A stretch of DNA of 64,000 bases, taken from the sequence record PP496436.1. One strand, given 5' to 3'. The position numbers and the translations under genes were made by a program. Positions 17,743 through 27,110 of the stretch are shown in pieces (the first letter of the stretch is position 1; every line of letters begins with the position of its first letter). The notes beneath the pieces were generated by a model, which saw nothing but the letters and a program-made list of their open reading frames with translations, had not been told where the DNA came from and searched no databases.

Positions 17743-18945
17743 ATGACCACCAAGACAATGCTGTTGAACAACGTCACCGCCATCGATGTAGGCTTCCTGA
17801 CCGCCCAAGGCGTGTTCGGGGCCAGCGTACGCCCTTCGTTCCTTATCACCGGCGAGATGTCCGAGGACGAACAGGTGGTTGTGGATTTCTCCACGATCAA
17901 GAAGTCCATCAAGGAACTGATCGACCACAAAGAGCTGGGCATCGATCACAAGACCATCGTCATCGGTCCAGCGTTTCCAAAACCTGAAGATGACGATAAC
18001 TTCACCGTCACTATGGGCGGTCCTGTGGGTGGTTCCGTTCGCATGACTGCCCCGGAAGACGCTTTCGTGTTCTTGTCCGAACGTTGCCCCAACGCACTCA
18101 GCGAAGACTGGAACACCAAGGGTAAGCTGCTGTCCGATTGCGTTGTAGTAGATCGTCACGGCGGGCTGGTATCCCCAGAGCGCTTCGTCATTCCGTTGGT
18201 GCAAGAACTGCTGAGCCGCGAACTGCCAAAGCTCTTCCCCACGTTGACCGACATCAAGGTGTTCTACAGCAAAGACGTCACAGCGCCGTTGCAGCCTAGC
18301 CACATCCGTGTGGGATCCCTGTTCAAAGGCGAAGATCACAATCCGATGATGGACACGCTGGTGGAAGACAACATCCGCCTCACCTACTCCCACGGTCTGC
18401 CCCGCTCCACTAGCTGGGGCTGCCAGAACATCCTGCACGGCCACGTCAGCGTCGTGACACTGGCTATGCCTCATTCCCGCTCCGACCATACACAGGCTAT
18501 CCTGCTGGACATTCGCCATGATCTGGCGGGTAAGTATCTGGTGGCCGAGCGTGACGTAATCCCAGCGGATGATGAACCGTCTGTACTGGACGACGAAGAT
18601 GCCGTATTGGAAGGCACCGACGAAGATCAGGACGCTAACTCCGACGATCTGATGGACGCACATACCATGTCTGAAGACGATGCGCCGGACGAAGTTGACG
18701 ACGTAGCTATCCAAGGTACGAACATCGGGTTCGAGTCCATGTCTCGCGGCTCGTTCAGCCTGTTCCTGCCACACGGCAGCACCCAGATCAAAGTGATGCC
18801 GACGGACACCACCGTTGAAAACATCGCCCAGTACATCTGGGACACTCACGTCCAGCCCGCCATCGAAGCCTACGAACTGACCGACGTATCCATGTACGTC
18901 TCGGAAGGCTTGGACAAAGGCGCATTCATCCGTCAGCAGGTATGA
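17743..18945 (+). CDS. Two-domain QueD/6-pyruvoyltetrahydropterin synthase-like (T-fold) protein
   Basis: DFSTIKK..IDHK, YSHGL...GCQNILHGH and DTTVENIA motifs; acidic insertion. Confidence 0.75.
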   Translation: MTTKTMLLNNVTAIDVGFLTAQGVFGASVRPSFLITGEMSEDEQVVVDFSTIKKSIKELIDHKELGIDHKTIVIGPAFPKPEDDDNFTVTMGGPVGGSVRMTAPEDAFVFLSERCPNALSEDWNTKGKLLSDCVVVDRHGGLVSPERFVIPLVQELLSRELPKLFPTLTDIKVFYSKDVTAPLQPSHIRVGSLFKGEDHNPMMDTLVEDNIRLTYSHGLPRSTSWGCQNILHGHVSVVTLAMPHSRSDHTQAILLDIRHDLAGKYLVAERDVIPADDEPSVLDDEDAVLEGTDEDQDANSDDLMDAHTMSEDDAPDEVDDVAIQGTNIGFESMSRGSFSLFLPHGSTQIKVMPTDTTVENIAQYIWDTHVQPAIEAYELTDVSMYVSEGLDKGAFIRQQV

Positions 18946-20009: not shown

Positions 20010-22874
20010 ATGTATGTAATCCGCCGAGACGGAAGTCGTTCCTTGTTCCAGAGCGAAAAAATCCGGGCTGCTATTGAACGAGCCTTCTTCGCGGTACACG
20101 GTCGCGACGCTGATATTCCCACACAGACTGGCCGTGTCACTCAGGCAGTTGAGGCTGGCTTGTCCAGTCAAGAATCTGTCCACATCGAAGTCATTCAGGA
20201 AGGTGTACTTGCTGCACTTATCGCTGAAGGCCACCCCCGCGTCGAGCATGCATACCGCGTGTACCGAGACGCCCGCACTGCACAGCGTGAGCTGCCCCAG
20301 GCTTACACTGATGAGAACGGTACTGCTATCAGCATCCCGGCTCTCACCGACATCCTCGCCCGCGTATCCTTCCGCCTGCCCTACGACGTGACGGTCCACT
20401 TGGACCTGGTGGCCGTAGCGCGCTCGGCGTTCCTGCAGATGTTCAACGGGATCAAGGCCGCTGACGTGCACAACGCACTGATCTTGGCGACCCGTGCGTT
20501 CATCGAGCGAGCGCCAGAGTACAGCAATCTGGCAGCGCAACTGCTGCTGGCTCAGACCGCCCGCGAAGTGTGGGATCTTGACGCCACCACGTACCCCACT
20601 GCCGAGACCTACGCCAAGTGCTACAAGCAGGAGACGGTAAGGTTGCTGCTCATCGGCGTGAAGGACGGCATCTACGACCCTACGCTGACCACCAGTGGCA
20701 AACGCGGCTTTGACCTTGAGCTGCTCCGAGCGGCAATCAAGCCGGAACGCGACCTGCAGTTCGACTACTTGGGTTTGCAGACCCTGTACGACCGCTACTT
20801 CATTCGCCGCGCCGGTGAAGGCGTTCGTATCGAAATGCCGCAGACGTTCTTCATGCGCGTGGCAATGGGCCTGGCGATCCTCGAAAGCGATCCGACATCC
20901 TCGGCGCTTGAGTTCTACGACGTGTTGTCCACGTTCGACTACATGGCCTCGACCCCGACCCTGTTCAACGCAGGCACCACCCACAGCCAGATGTCGAGTT
21001 GCTACTTGACCACTGTGCCGGACGACCTGCTGGGCATCTACGGTGCCATCCAAGACAACGCCATGCTGTCCAAGTACGCTGGCGGTCTGGGCAACGACTG
21101 GACGCCGGTGCGTGCACTGGGAAGCCTGATCAAAGGCACCAACGGCAGATCGCAGGGCGTGGTTCCGTTCCTCAAGGTGGTCAACGATACCGCTGTCGCC
21201 GTGAACCAAGGCGGCAAGCGCAAGGGTGCCGTATGTGCCTACCTTGAAACGTGGCACATGGATATCGAAGAGTTCACCGAGCTGCGCAAGAACACAGGTG
21301 ATGATCGCCGTCGTACCCACGACATGAACACCGCCAACTGGGTTCCTGACCTGTTCATGGATCGCCAGATGAAGGACATGGACTGGACCTTGTTCACTCC
21401 GTCGGAATGCCCTGATCTGCATGAGCTGTACGGGGAAGAGTTCAAAGCCCGCTACGAGTTCTACGAAGCCGAAGCTGCCGCCGGTCGTATCCAGACCTTC
21501 AAGACCGTGCGCGCCAAGGACTTGTACCGCAAGATTCTGTCCATGATCTTCGAAACCGGCCACCCATGGATCACGTTCAAAGATCCATGCAACATCCGTA
21601 GCCCGCAGAGCCACGTCGGCGTCGTGCACAGCTCCAACCTGTGTACCGAGATTACCCTGAACACGAAGTCCTCCGCGCCTGAACTCAAGGACGGCGAGAC
21701 GGCCGTGTGTAACTTGGGTTCGATCAACCTGCCGCGCCACTTGAAATACGTGGGCGCGGGACTGGACATCGACCACGAGAAGCTGAAACGCACCGTTACT
21801 CTGGCCGTGCGTATGCTGGACAACGTGATCGACATCAACTTCTACCCGACCAAGGAAGCGAAGAACAGCAACATGCGCCACCGTCCGATCGGTCTGGGTG
21901 TCATGGGCTTCCAAGACGTGTTGTACGCCAACAGCGTCGGATATGACAGCCCCCACGCCGAGTTCTGGGCGGGGTACTTCCAGCGTTCCATTGCTCTGTA
22001 CGCCATCAACGCATCGGCTGACCTGGCCCAACTGCGCGGCGCGTACGAATCGTTCCAAGGTTCGGACTGGTCGATTGGTGTTCTTCCAGTGCACACGTTC
22101 CAAACCCAGATCGATATCCGTCGGCGTCAGGGCTTCAAGGTTGATGCTGCACAGAAAGCCCAAGATCTGGCTGACACCATCGGCAAGACCAAGATCAACG
22201 GCAAGACGCTGGCCGATCTGGAAAGCTACTTGGCGAACAAGGTCACCCATGGTATGCGTAACAGCAACGTGATGGCGATTGCGCCGACGGCCACCATCTC
22301 TAACATCGTCGGCGTGACTCAGAGCATCGAGCCTACGTACGAGCAGGTGTTCGTCAAGGACAACCTGAGCGGCAAGTTCACCGTGATCAACCGCTTCTTG
22401 GTTGAGCAGCTGCGTAACTGCGGTCTGTGGGACTCGGACATGCTCGACCAGCTCAAGATGAACAACGGATCCATTCAGGGCATCCCTGAAATCCCGGAAG
22501 GCATCAAGGACGTGTATCGCACTGCGTTCGAGTACGAGCCTGAGGTGCTGATCAACTGCGCCATCCAGCGTCAGATCCCAATCGATCAGGCACAGTCGCT
22601 CAACCTGTACATGGCGAACCCGTCGGGCAAGAAGCTGGCGAACACGTACGACTACGGCTTCGAGACTGGTTTGAAGACCACGTATTACCTCCGCGCCAAA
22701 GCCGCATCGTCCATTGAGAAGTCCACCAGTCGTACCGGCGGCGAACTGAACAGCGTAAAGAACGCTGCTAAGGTAGAAGCCCCCGTTGCTCCTCCAATGC
22801 CGGAAGCTGAAGGTGCTGCTTGCTTCCTGCGTCCAGGTGATCCGGGCTTCGCAGAGTGCGAAAGCTGCCAGTAG
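20010..22874 (+). CDS. nrdA: Class Ia ribonucleotide reductase alpha subunit
   Basis: N-terminal ATP cone (VIRRDG), STPTLFN, SSNLCTEI, APTATIS, TTYYLR and C-terminal CESC redox pair. Confidence 0.97.
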   Translation: MYVIRRDGSRSLFQSEKIRAAIERAFFAVHGRDADIPTQTGRVTQAVEAGLSSQESVHIEVIQEGVLAALIAEGHPRVEHAYRVYRDARTAQRELPQAYTDENGTAISIPALTDILARVSFRLPYDVTVHLDLVAVARSAFLQMFNGIKAADVHNALILATRAFIERAPEYSNLAAQLLLAQTAREVWDLDATTYPTAETYAKCYKQETVRLLLIGVKDGIYDPTLTTSGKRGFDLELLRAAIKPERDLQFDYLGLQTLYDRYFIRRAGEGVRIEMPQTFFMRVAMGLAILESDPTSSALEFYDVLSTFDYMASTPTLFNAGTTHSQMSSCYLTTVPDDLLGIYGAIQDNAMLSKYAGGLGNDWTPVRALGSLIKGTNGRSQGVVPFLKVVNDTAVAVNQGGKRKGAVCAYLETWHMDIEEFTELRKNTGDDRRRTHDMNTANWVPDLFMDRQMKDMDWTLFTPSECPDLHELYGEEFKARYEFYEAEAAAGRIQTFKTVRAKDLYRKILSMIFETGHPWITFKDPCNIRSPQSHVGVVHSSNLCTEITLNTKSSAPELKDGETAVCNLGSINLPRHLKYVGAGLDIDHEKLKRTVTLAVRMLDNVIDINFYPTKEAKNSNMRHRPIGLGVMGFQDVLYANSVGYDSPHAEFWAGYFQRSIALYAINASADLAQLRGAYESFQGSDWSIGVLPVHTFQTQIDIRRRQGFKVDAAQKAQDLADTIGKTKINGKTLADLESYLANKVTHGMRNSNVMAIAPTATISNIVGVTQSIEPTYEQVFVKDNLSGKFTVINRFLVEQLRNCGLWDSDMLDQLKMNNGSIQGIPEIPEGIKDVYRTAFEYEPEVLINCAIQRQIPIDQAQSLNLYMANPSGKKLANTYDYGFETGLKTTYYLRAKAASSIEKSTSRTGGELNSVKNAAKVEAPVAPPMPEAEGAACFLRPGDPGFAECESCQ

Positions 22875-22898
22875 TCTGATCCAGCTGTAATGTAAATG

Positions 22899-22930
22899 AT
22901 AGGGCGGGCAGGCAACTGTTTCCGCCCTAT
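22899..22930 (+). promoter_or_regulatory. GCAA-loop hairpin between nrdA and the pseudo-nrdB (terminator or processing element)
   Basis: ATAGGGCGG/CCGCCCTAT outer stem plus CAG-GCAA-CTG. Confidence 0.55.
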
Positions 22931-22958
22931 TTCATCTGTTGCACATGGGGCTTACCTT

Positions 22959-23744
22959 ATGAGTGCTGTACCTAATCGTGTGTCCCTAGTGGACAAGCGC
23001 ATCTTCAACGGAAAGGCTGATGTCAACGCCTTGCTACCGCTTCGGTATCCGTGGGCCTATGACGCCTACGTGAACGCGAACAAGAACCACTGGCTTCCCG
23101 GCGACATCCATCTTGATCTGGATCGGGTCAGCCACAAGCATCAAGCGTATTGGCCTGCTGTAAGCAACTTCCTGATCAGCGTAGCCCAGCGCGCCGAGAT
23201 CGATCGCCAGCACATGCTCTTCGTATACCGGGCCACCACGGCGCCCGAGGTTCGTCAGCGCTTCCTCCGTATGGGTCAGGAAGACACCATCGCCATCATG
23301 CTGGCACAAGACATGGGGCTGGCACTGGAAGACTTCATCCCGTCTCCAGAGGTGGTGTTGTACAAGACGGAGAAAGCCTACCTGGCCGGGCTCATGGAAC
23401 TGATCGAGCGTAAGCTCTTGTCCGTGGCCGAAGGCAAGTACATCCTCGAAGAAGTACCGGGGGTGCACCAGAATATACGCAAAGCAGTTGAGAACATCCA
23501 CCGCGACGTGGACTCTCAGTTGGACTTCCTGTTCACCCTGCTGCGCACCTTCCTTGGCGAATGCGAGGTCAGCTCCTACCGGGGTTGCAACACGCAAGCG
23601 TTCTGGCAGAGCAGCAACCAGTACCACGCCCACCTGAACTCGATTGTTCTGAACGTTCTGACGGGGGCGCCGGTTACCCCTACGCCGTATCAGACACAGG
23701 TGGTCGCAGACAACCAAACCAAAGACACACTGACCTGGGACTGA
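22959..23744 (+). CDS. Degenerate NrdB-like protein lacking di-iron ligands and radical Tyr
   Basis: Keeps PLRYPWA, NHWLP, PEVRQ.FLR and C-terminal LTWD; EEAxHxxxY becomes EDTIAIMLA and RDESxH becomes RDVDSQ. Confidence 0.75.
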   Translation: MSAVPNRVSLVDKRIFNGKADVNALLPLRYPWAYDAYVNANKNHWLPGDIHLDLDRVSHKHQAYWPAVSNFLISVAQRAEIDRQHMLFVYRATTAPEVRQRFLRMGQEDTIAIMLAQDMGLALEDFIPSPEVVLYKTEKAYLAGLMELIERKLLSVAEGKYILEEVPGVHQNIRKAVENIHRDVDSQLDFLFTLLRTFLGECEVSSYRGCNTQAFWQSSNQYHAHLNSIVLNVLTGAPVTPTPYQTQVVADNQTKDTLTWD

Positions 23745-23746
23745 CT

Positions 23747-24721
23747 ATGACCGTTCTTACTCACGTAAACCCGCACGAACATGAGTGGGCGTTGGAAAAG
23801 ACCTTGGCGTCAAACTCGAACCATTGGTTGCCCCAAGAGATTGGACTGTCCACCGACATCCTGCAATGGAAGACCGGACAGTTGAGCGACGACGAGATGC
23901 GCATGGTCAAGCGTAATCTAGGGTTCTTCTCCACCGCTGATTCGCTGGCCGCGAACAACATCATTCTCGGCACCATACGCCACATCAAGAACAGGAACTG
24001 TCGCCACTACCTGTTCCGACAAGCGTATGAAGAGGCATTCCACACGGAGTCCTACGCGTACGTGATCGAGAGCCTTGGCTTGGATCAGGGTGAGATCTTC
24101 AATGCGTACAACGAGATCGAGTCGATCCGGGCCAAAGACGAATTCCTTCTTCCGTACATCGAGGTGCTGACTGATCCGGCGTTCCAAGCGGACACCATCG
24201 AGAACGTCCAGATCCTGCTCAAGTCGCTGTTCGCATTCGCGTGCATCATGGAAGGTCTGTTCTTCTACGTCGGCTTCGTCCAGATGCTGTCGCTGGGCCG
24301 TCGCAACAAGTTGCCCGGTTCCTCGCAAGAGTTCCAGTACATCCTGCGCGACGAGAGCGGCCACTGCAACTTCGGTATCGACCTGATCAACACGATCAAG
24401 CGCGAGTACCCCGGCGTGTGGACTGCGGAACTCCAGAAGGAGTGCACCGACATGTTGCGCACCGGCGTTGACCTGGAGCAAGCCTACGCGGTAGACACTC
24501 TGCCCAACGGTGTGCTGGGTCTGAACGCGGACAACACACGCCAGTACCTGGAGTTCATCGCGGACCGCCGCTGCATTCAGGTGGAGCTGCCGGTACAGTA
24601 CAATCAGAACGACAACCCGTTCCCGTGGATGTCGGAGATGGTTGACTTGAACAACGAGGAGAACTTCTTCGAGAAGAAGGTGCTTGCGTACCAGCAAGCC
24701 GCCGGACTGGAGTGGGACTAA
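23747..24721 (+). CDS. nrdB: Class Ia ribonucleotide reductase beta subunit
   Basis: NHWLP, FSTADS, EEAFHTESY, MEGLFF, RDESGH and C-terminal YQQAAGLEWD. Confidence 0.96.
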   Translation: MTVLTHVNPHEHEWALEKTLASNSNHWLPQEIGLSTDILQWKTGQLSDDEMRMVKRNLGFFSTADSLAANNIILGTIRHIKNRNCRHYLFRQAYEEAFHTESYAYVIESLGLDQGEIFNAYNEIESIRAKDEFLLPYIEVLTDPAFQADTIENVQILLKSLFAFACIMEGLFFYVGFVQMLSLGRRNKLPGSSQEFQYILRDESGHCNFGIDLINTIKREYPGVWTAELQKECTDMLRTGVDLEQAYAVDTLPNGVLGLNADNTRQYLEFIADRRCIQVELPVQYNQNDNPFPWMSEMVDLNNEENFFEKKVLAYQQAAGLEWD

Positions 24722-24835: not shown

Positions 24836-24869
24836 AAATAGGGGAGTGAGCAATCGCTTCCCTATTTTT
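24836..24869 (+). terminator. Intrinsic terminator of the RNR operon
   Basis: AAATAGGGGAGTGA-GCAA-TCGCTTCCCTATTT followed by more T. Confidence 0.8.
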
Positions 24870-25955: not shown

Positions 25956-27110
25956 ATGAACGATGATCTGAAAATCACAGAGGTTAACTCTGTGAAGGAA
26001 TACGATGAACACGTGGAAGAGCTGCTGCTGACCTTGTTGGGGCTGGGTTCTTCCACTACTCGCAACGACCAAGGTACTCGCAAGCTCGGCGCCACATCCA
26101 TCAGCTTCAACCTGCTGTCGATGTATCCCTCGATCCCGATGACCACGCTGCGCCCGATCTCGTGGACCAGTATCCTCGGCGAGATGCTGGGTTTCATCCG
26201 TGGCGAGACCAACGTGCAAGCGTTCAAGGGCCTTGGCACCAACGTCTGGAACGCCAATGCCAAGGAGCCCGCGTGGAAGAACGACTTGCTGGCGCCGAAC
26301 GAAGGTGACCTCGGGCCGATCTACGGCAAGCAGTGGCGCAAGTGGGAAGATATCAAGCTGGCGGATTATGGACGTGATCTGTCCAAGCTAGGCTACACAC
26401 AGGTGGGCTGGCTGCATGACGGATCGAGTTGGGAGACTGTAGGCTCGCCGAATCCCGGTGTATGGCGTCGGGAGGTTGACCAGCTGATGGACGCCTTGAA
26501 CCGTATTAAGTCCAATCCTAACGATCGTCGCGCTGTCATCTCGGCGTGGAATCCCGGTGACATGGATTTCATGGCTCTGCCGCCGTGCCACGTGATGATG
26601 CAGCTGACCACGGTGCCTTACGCCCAGCACAAGTACGGCACCTACACAGATGGTGCCAGCGACTTCGAGATCGACTTCAACGAGAAGTACCCGGAGCAGG
26701 TAGTATCGGATACTGTCGAGCCGAATAGCAGCGGAGAGACTGTTCCCCGGTACGCGCTCAATCTGGTCGTGACTCAGCGCAGCCAAGACACCCTGCTCGG
26801 TCGGGCGTATAACATTCCGGCGTATGCCACTCTGCTTCGCCTGTTCGCTCACCTGCTGGAAATGGCGCCGGGTAATCTGGAGTTCAACGTCGGCGACCAG
26901 CATTTGTACAGCAACCATGAAAAGGCGGCTGACGAGATTACTGACCGCGAAAGTCTGGACAAGGATGAAGAAGGCGAAAAGCTATTCCAACTCTCTATCG
27001 TCGGCGTGGACAAGTTCAAAGATCTGGACACCCTCACCGCCGACAACTTCATTCTGACCCATCAGGTTACACATGACAAGCTGGAGTCCGACACCAAGAT
27101 GACGGTGTAG
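25956..27110 (+). CDS. thyA: Thymidylate synthase
   Basis: GPIYGKQWR, RRAVISAWNP, ALPPCH, QRSQD..LG, YNI (dUMP-specifying Asn) and GDQHLYSNH. Confidence 0.93.
   Translation: MNDDLKITEVNSVKEYDEHVEELLLTLLGLGSSTTRNDQGTRKLGATSISFNLLSMYPSIPMTTLRPISWTSILGEMLGFIRGETNVQAFKGLGTNVWNANAKEPAWKNDLLAPNEGDLGPIYGKQWRKWEDIKLADYGRDLSKLGYTQVGWLHDGSSWETVGSPNPGVWRREVDQLMDALNRIKSNPNDRRAVISAWNPGDMDFMALPPCHVMMQLTTVPYAQHKYGTYTDGASDFEIDFNEKYPEQVVSDTVEPNSSGETVPRYALNLVVTQRSQDTLLGRAYNIPAYATLLRLFAHLLEMAPGNLEFNVGDQHLYSNHEKAADEITDRESLDKDEEGEKLFQLSIVGVDKFKDLDTLTADNFILTHQVTHDKLESDTKMTV

Follow-up and report, generated by a model that had tools for sequence, protein, structure and literature searches.

Organization of the ribonucleotide reductase locus

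The DNA analysed here is a stretch of 64,000 nucleotides (nt) from sequence record PP496436.1, hereafter called the window, and our subject is an open reading frame, ORF1, which lies between nrdA and nrdB, the genes for the large (alpha) and small (beta, or R2) subunits of class I ribonucleotide reductase (RNR). The RNR cluster of the window is 100% identical to region 20010-24721 of PP496436.1, the record of Pseudomonas phage vB_PpuM-Illi-2. This P. putida myovirus of 201 kb comes from Estonia and has been placed in jumbo-phage cluster G3 of the CEPEST phages (PMC7616413). The record annotates all three genes at the positions given in Table 1, with ORF1 as a hypothetical protein. An earlier reading of the sequence by a model, referred to here as the original prediction, had taken ORF1 for an intact but inactivated copy of NrdB that is translationally coupled to the active one. 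Both intactness and coupling were borne out, as the stop codon of ORF1 is separated from the nrdB start codon by 2 nt (TGA-CT-ATG) and a Shine-Dalgarno-like GGGA lies inside the final Trp-Asp codons of ORF1. We refer to the product of ORF1 and its ligand-less relatives as beta-prime.

Table 1. Features of the RNR locus in window coordinates (aa, amino acids).
Feature	Position	Strand	Evidence
nrdA, class I RNR large subunit, one ATP-cone, 954 aa	20010..22874	+	Pfam ATP-cone, Ribonuc_red_lgN, Ribonuc_red_lgC, E 6.5e-180; record: large subunit
Stable hairpin, ATAGGG...CCCTAT then T-rich run, nrdA-ORF1 spacer	22899..22930	+	Folding
ORF1, ligand-less R2 paralogue (beta-prime), 261 aa, deposited as hypothetical protein	22959..23744	+	hhalign, AF2, Foldseek, dN/dS
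N-terminal arm and helix A, aa 7-45; invariant K13, D21, N23, P27, Y37, W45	22977..23093	+	Alignment A1
Helix B-C loop motif, aa 90-100, Y-R-x-T-T-A-P-E-x-R-Q; invariant Y90, P96, E97, R99	23226..23258	+	Alignment A1
Degenerate first E-x-x-H and radical site, aa 108-116	23280..23306	+	hhalign map, HMMER alignment to PDB R2
Degenerate second E-x-x-H, aa 182-187, R-D-V-D-S-Q; Asp183 kept	23502..23519	+	hhalign
Predicted disordered C-terminal tail ending L-T-W-D	23697..23741	+	pLDDT < 50 for aa 247-261
Coupling junction: Trp-Asp codons with GGGA, TGA stop, 2 nt, nrdB ATG	23736..23749	+	Sequence
nrdB, active-type R2, 324 aa	23747..24721	+	Pfam PF00268 E 1e-78; PDB 6y2n E 4e-111
Terminator-like hairpin 3' of nrdB, same ATAGGG...CCCTAT motif, T-rich sequence after	24836..24867	+	Sequence

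ORF1 is a full-length R2 homologue

Pairwise and family searches gave only a weak R2 signal for ORF1. The Pfam model PF00268 was matched below threshold (aa 24-107, 21.8 bits vs a threshold of 33.6), BLASTP against the neighbouring nrdB returned a single stretch of 34 aa, and phmmer against the PDB aligned aa 6-111 with Chlamydia-type R2 chains at E-values of 5e-12 to 1e-9, the same chains being matched by the phage nrdB at 1e-106 to 4e-111. A search of 1.8 billion representative proteins for relatives of ORF1 gave 408 matches, the best of which were proteins of 270-350 aa that are ligand-less like ORF1. An alignment of 23 members of this family (A1) was compared by hhalign with an alignment of true nrdB (A2), and the two matched with a probability of 100% and an E-value of 6.7e-68 over 324 columns, which indicates that the homology spans the full length of ORF1, at an overall identity of about 20% between the family and true nrdB.

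The structural model agreed with the alignments. A monomer model of ORF1, built by AlphaFold2 (AF2) with A1, had a predicted local distance difference test score (pLDDT) of 83.1 and a predicted template modelling score (pTM) of 0.82, and was confident except for the last 15 residues. Foldseek searches of the PDB with this model placed Chlamydia NrdB at the top (E 1e-7), followed by other R2 proteins; the best 47 PDB matches, including all 40 with E <= 0.001, were R2 proteins, with TMq values up to 0.69, and a viral structure library returned ordinary R2 only. The R2lox proteins, which have an intact Mn/Fe site and a ligand channel, appeared only at Foldseek ranks 48-50 with E of about 1.5e-3, and the ligands of ORF1 are lost, so ORF1 was not assigned to that group. 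Sequence profiles and the predicted model thus confirm ORF1 as a full-length homologue with the R2 fold of the class I RNR small subunit (PF00268, ferritin-like).

ORF1 has lost the catalytic residues and keeps the arm, the loop and the tail motif

Residue correspondences between nrdB and ORF1 were read from the hhalign column map. The six metal ligands D65, E96, H99, E169, E203 and H206 of nrdB correspond to A79, D109, A112, a Lys or Leu, V184 and Q187 of ORF1, the E169 column having a register uncertainty of one residue in the divergent C-terminal half of the protein. Five of the six ligands are therefore replaced, and the sixth has undergone the only conservative change, from Glu to Asp, so that ORF1 lacks the six-ligand set of an R2 protein. 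The column of the radical tyrosine, Y103 in nrdB, holds Ala116, neither a Tyr nor the Phe of class Ic. Among the closest beta-prime relatives (P0001-P0011), this column contains Ala, Val, Ile, Phe or Arg, and a core Tyr is confined to some of the more distant ligand-less members of the orphan type. In the tail, the P-F-P-W motif (T-P-Y in ORF1) is followed by a deletion of about 20 residues that extends to the closing L-x-W-D, and the column of the tail tyrosine Y315 is occupied by Asn. The loss of the E-x-x-H ligands and the radical Tyr, and the apparent loss of the equivalent of Y356, had all been anticipated in the original prediction. With no metal site, no radical Tyr and no radical-transfer Tyr, ORF1 is, as judged from its sequence, catalytically inert.

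Metal-free R2 proteins that carry a radical have to be considered at this point, since the NrdF proteins of class Ie also combine an R2 fold with substituted ligands, and a Lys at or next to one ligand position of ORF1 gives it a superficial likeness to the class Ie substitution pattern. Class Ie enzymes keep a Tyr-derived radical and need NrdI. ORF1, however, has Ala in the radical column, keeps neither of the His ligands and lacks the tail segment with the Tyr, and no nrdI-like gene is annotated among the record features within 6 kb on either side of the RNR cluster. We consider a class Ie-like function of ORF1 to be highly improbable.

The residues that ORF1 keeps are concentrated in three segments (Table 1). 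Across the 23 members of A1, W45 and W260 are invariant and L258 is nearly so, which agrees with the earlier proposal that the N-H-W motif and an alpha-binding-type tail ending in L-T-W-D are retained, and the alignments likewise support the N-terminal arm as present in ORF1 and absent from nrdB. D183, at the degenerate second E-x-x-H, is nearly invariant in A1 as well. From its sequence, the tail looks like the alpha-binding motif minus the radical-transfer Tyr.

ORF1 is maintained by selection

ORF1 could be regarded as a pseudogene or an annotation artefact on the grounds that its Pfam score is below threshold, that it has no PHROG family, and that it is a hypothetical protein in the record. 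This explanation is contradicted by its conservation. In nine sister phages with 92.7-100% DNA identity, the 786-nt ORF1 is intact in 9 of 9, with no stop codon or frameshift. The ratio of nonsynonymous to synonymous substitution rates (dN/dS), calculated by the Nei-Gojobori method over the 36 pairs of these phages, was 0.099 for the whole of ORF1, compared to 0.105 for nrdA and 0.035 for nrdB. Within ORF1, dN/dS was 0.066 for aa 1-111, 0.158 for aa 112-240, and 0.055 for the tail (aa 241-261).

More distant relatives, all metagenomic, were found at 29-59% identity to ORF1, namely P0003 (59%), P0004 (31%), P0154 (30%) and P0005 (30%). Each of them is encoded directly 5' of a complete nrdB, and 3' of nrdA where the contig extends that far. 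The gap between beta-prime and nrdB is 2 nt in contigs L010, L045 and L014 and 4 nt in L011, the nrdB of these four lineages is 58-74% identical to the window nrdB, and two of the four contigs share further genes with the window phage. Neutral decay is excluded by the intact reading frame, the low dN/dS and the synteny in distant lineages; the decay or frameshifts in relatives that the original prediction had named as evidence against it were not seen. Together with the confident AF2 fold, these observations leave almost no room for ORF1 as a pseudogene or an artefact, and a decaying duplicate was rejected.

The gene has a narrow known distribution. GenBank phages carry it only in the nine P. 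putida jumbo phages, and PHROGs has no family for it. Among representative bacterial genomes, the best 80 of at least 600 matching stretches were all ordinary single nrdB with no ligand-less tandem copy, and 80 nrdA loci from IMG/VR, among at least 80 matches, held ordinary single nrdB only.

The active NrdB lacks an arm and loop module that ORF1 retains

The window nrdB has all six ligands, the radical Tyr Y103, the tail Tyr, the Trp of N-H-W and the Asp of R-D-E, with the pattern D-E-H-Y-E-E-H. Its N-terminal arm is missing and its B-C loop is degenerate. In cellular nrdB of the same clade, a conserved N-terminal arm ends in W-A-W of helix A, and T-A-P-E-C-R-Q occupies the loop between helices B and C. 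We compared the arms with the majority sequence of nrdB that stand without a tandem copy (solo nrdB). The five tandem beta-prime proteins matched at 17-22 of 28 positions without gaps, and their five partner nrdB matched at 4-8 of 28, with 4-12 residues deleted; 38 solo cellular nrdB matched their own majority at 26.5 of 28, and these cellular proteins keep the loop motif as well.

The first viral comparison set was biased, because its IMG/VR loci had been retrieved by the arm pattern itself, and the test was therefore redone with 73 solo viral nrdB that were retrieved via their nrdA neighbour, independently of the arm and loop motifs. Whole-arm identity in this set had a median of 9 of 28, since it includes a marine phage clade with a divergent first half of the arm, and core motifs were scored instead: x-V-N-Q-L/I-V/L-P for the arm core (residues D, N and P in beta-prime) and x-E-C-R-Q for the loop. 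Among the solo viral nrdB, the arm core was kept in 72 and the loop motif in all 73. Both motifs were kept in all 24 beta-prime proteins, where the loop reads P-E-x-R-Q except for one P-E-C-R-L, and neither was kept in any of the five partner nrdB. Moreover, 76 alignment columns were at least 95% conserved in 111 solo nrdB, and in only 7 of these columns did four or more of the five partner nrdB deviate. Since 6 of these 7 fall in the arm and helix A or in the B-C loop, the relaxation of the partner nrdB is specific rather than general. As read from these alignments, the active nrdB has shed one specific module, otherwise nearly universal in the clade, which its inert neighbour keeps.

Several other groups of R2 proteins were noted during these searches. 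Four proteins of 630-660 aa (P0031, P0050, P0058 and P0126) were tried as natural fusions of beta-prime and beta, which would have been evidence of interaction, and were rejected, as they consist of an nrdB with an insert of about 300 aa; this insert sits exactly at the first E-x-x-H region and looks like an intein. Nine proteins of 430-740 aa (P0014, P0020, P0063, P0088, P0089, P0094, P0111, P0123 and P0151) contain an R2 domain that scores weakly and carries the arm motif; the 100-400 aa in front of this domain match no Pfam family. A large phage nrdB clade in IMG/VR (L063-L132), of 332-336 aa, lies beside an nrdA that matches the window NrdA from about residue 130, past the ATP-cone. Its members have Glu at the first ligand and no Tyr at the radical position, which is class Ic-like, and they end in D-D-F instead of L-x-W-D.

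Proposed role of ORF1 as a partner of NrdB

The original prediction had offered three roles for ORF1: it might be a structural partner in a heterodimer, inhibit host NrdA in a dominant-negative manner, or act as a specificity adaptor. The comparative evidence favours the first, because the coupling is tight in all five lineages and because the inactive copy keeps the arm and loop, which are missing only from the active nrdB next to it. By analogy with yeast Rnr2-Rnr4, we propose, with a probability of roughly 55%, that the ORF1 protein pairs with NrdB as a beta/beta-prime heterodimer. The two proteins would be made together via translational coupling; beta would carry the metal-radical cofactor and the radical path, and beta-prime would supply the arm and helix B-C loop module lost from beta. 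The second L-x-W-D tail, that of beta-prime, may dock on the second NrdA protomer of the alpha2 dimer. In alpha2beta2 complexes of class I, only one alpha/beta pair is engaged at any one time. We infer the physical heterodimer, the binding of the tail to NrdA and any chaperone or cofactor-assembly role from these gene-level patterns.

Related ligand-less R2 genes were also found apart from RNR genes. Six IMG/VR contigs of 205-323 kb (L022, L023, L028, L029, L042 and L044) and three others (L047, L049 and L051) encode a ligand-less R2 that carries the arm, the loop and an L-x-W-D/E tail, and neither nrdA nor nrdB lies within 5-8 kb of it. The 80 IMG/VR nrdA loci described above come from other contigs, so the absence applies to these 5-8 kb. 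The thyA gene lies 1-2 kb upstream of the orphan copy in L022, L023, L029 and L051. NAMPT and NUDIX genes are located near the orphan copy of L023, and a NUDIX gene near that of L022.

Three points weigh against pairing with NrdB. First, it is probable that all five tandem lineages share a single ancestor, and the loss of the module in all five partner nrdB may represent few independent events. Second, beta-prime keeps both the arm and the loop on which it presumably docks, which a beta-prime homodimer would need equally. Third, the ligand-less R2 that stand alone in phage-like contigs suggest that some family members may act without a phage-encoded beta.

The second and third of these points lend themselves to a different explanation, in which beta-prime works alone, probably as a homodimer, and is a radical-dead competitor or regulator whose L-x-W-D tails occupy the beta-tail site on phage or host NrdA, while orphans may pair with host NrdB. 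C-terminal peptides of beta inhibit class I RNR, and the tail motif of beta-prime is kept while its radical-transfer Tyr segment is deleted. Beta-prime has the arm and B-C loop that a self-sufficient dimer would have, cellular nrdB of the same clade share the L-x-W-D/E end, and the orphans beside thyA in jumbo-phage and other phage-like contigs fit this explanation as well. It leaves unexplained, however, why the arm and loop are lost in exactly those nrdB that have a beta-prime neighbour, and it gives no account of an inhibitor that is coupled to the enzyme's own subunit in every lineage. We regard it as possible but unlikely for ORF1, although the orphan copies keep an inhibitory or host-directed role alive for the family, and the evidence neither favours nor contradicts the decoy named in the original prediction.

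The recurrent association with thyA, which in the window lies 1.2 kb downstream of the RNR genes, raises another alternative, that beta-prime is a scaffold outside RNR chemistry, for example an adaptor that ties RNR or thymidylate synthase into a phage complex for deoxyribonucleoside triphosphate (dNTP) synthesis. The strong conservation of surface motifs despite a dead catalytic core would be in line with such a role. The link to ThyA, however, is proximity within nucleotide-metabolism modules only, and every retained feature is specific to R2 proteins, namely the arm, the tail, and the residues W45 and D183, both of which fall in columns where R2 residues are conserved; this makes a scaffold improbable.

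Pairing with NrdB and the orphan copies could be accommodated in one broader, tentative proposal, in which ligand-less R2 proteins form a broad viral family that is so far undescribed and ORF1 is its first member from an isolate. All members would have the arm, the B-C loop and the L-x-W-D/E tail but no radical path. They would be obligate partners of an arm-less NrdB in one phage lineage and in other jumbo phages would stand alone by thyA, acting on host class I RNR by pairing with host NrdB or by capping host NrdA. If this is true, the ligand-less R2 family would be a viral handle on the host dNTP supply.

Spacer elements and neighbouring genes

The 83-nt spacer between nrdA and ORF1 folds at -31.3 kcal/mol (z = -3.0). 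Its hairpin motif, ATAGGG...CCCTAT, has only two matches in the 64-kb window (22899-22930 and 24838-24865) against 0.03 expected by chance, and the pair brackets ORF1-nrdB. The spacer hairpin is possibly a terminator, an attenuator or an RNA-stability element. In the sister records KoPa-5 and Voja-6, ORF1 is annotated from an ATG further upstream, in the region equivalent to window positions 22896-22958, giving 849 nt. Alignment with relatives favours the start at 22959, and the longer version overlaps the hairpin.

Peetri alone among the sister phages has a free-standing gene for an HNH endonuclease inserted between nrdA and ORF1 (PP496444.1 22545-23246; L002 4484-5185), and the nrdA of Peetri is also longer, at 2916 nt. 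The possibility that ORF1 is a split gene or a homing-endonuclease remnant was rejected, as ORF1 has a complete predicted R2 fold that is conserved at 30% identity.

The thyA gene of the window (25956-27110) encodes a thymidylate synthase homologue of 384 aa, compared to 266 positions in the Pfam model, and it therefore carries insertions; long ThyA homologues are also encoded beside orphan beta-prime genes. Upstream of the RNR genes, window positions 17743-18945 encode a 400-aa protein that has a 6-pyruvoyl-tetrahydropterin synthase (QueD-like) domain at its C-terminal end, which may hint at DNA modification of the 7-deazaguanine type. The source paper of these phages reports an unusually poor DNA yield (PMC7616413).

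Comparison with known small subunits

To our knowledge, the small subunits of bacterial and phage class I RNR are treated as homodimers, and the yeast enzyme is the only well-studied obligate beta/beta-prime enzyme. Our literature search found no ligand-less R2 partner in a phage or bacterium, and a survey of phage RNR reported that no duplicated RNR genes were known in phages (PMC3653736).

The closest solved structures to ORF1 and the phage nrdB are those of the class Ic R2c protein, Chlamydia trachomatis NrdB (PDB 1syy, 4d8f and 4m1i), together with 6y2n. R2c shares the N-terminal arm and the L-x-W-D tail with ORF1. Unlike ORF1, which is without a site, R2c has a complete Mn/Fe site and is catalytic, and at positions where R2c carries Glu and Phe, the phage nrdB carries Asp and Tyr.

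Two other systems combine unequal R2 chains. The apicomplexan R2_e2 is a divergent second R2 that accompanies a canonical R2 and has been discussed as part of a heteromer, but it is eukaryotic and its iron ligands are largely conserved (PMC3824934), whereas those of ORF1 are lost. In E. coli, a mixed dimer of beta and a C-terminally truncated beta-prime contains one protomer that is unable to serve NrdA and displays half-site behaviour, as cited in PMC5154197. There, beta-prime comes from the beta gene itself by truncation, keeps the metal site and has no tail; ORF1 is the reverse, with the tail end kept and no metal site.

The nearest parallel in principle is the yeast small subunit, the active form of which is a beta/beta-prime heterodimer with Rnr4 as the chain without diiron ligands, according to the summary of Perlstein 2005 and Sommerhalter 2004 in PMC3824934. 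Like Rnr4, ORF1 is a full-length R2 paralogue without diiron residues, encoded together with an active R2, and both are maintained by selection, for ORF1 as judged from its dN/dS, its synteny in five lineages and the complementary motif loss in its partner; the principle we propose is the same. The two differ in origin, as ORF1 arose independently in a bacterial clade of Chlamydia/beta-proteobacterial-type NrdB. It is most closely related to NrdB of the Chlamydia/Burkholderiales type from bacteria and phages, no common descent with Rnr4 was found, and the yeast chains 1jk0 and 1smq gave far lower matches even for the active phage nrdB. ORF1 has also lost far more than Rnr4, with five of six ligands replaced and the sixth changed from Glu to Asp, and with the radical Tyr and the tail Tyr segment missing, and it is about 60 aa shorter. 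Furthermore, the phage pair is encoded in an operon and translationally coupled, with the arm and loop motifs split between the two proteins, and the phage heterodimer is a proposal based on the genes.

The present analysis would correct the annotation of a gene that is now a hypothetical protein without a PHROG family, and it suggests that ligand-less R2 proteins are more widespread among uncultured jumbo phages. If NrdB and ORF1 do pair, the locus would provide a clean system for asking what makes a dead protomer tolerable or advantageous in an enzyme that works asymmetrically, and what role the clade-specific N-terminal arm has. A phage operon with a dedicated inert beta-prime would then be an independent, simpler and naturally minimised version of the yeast solution.

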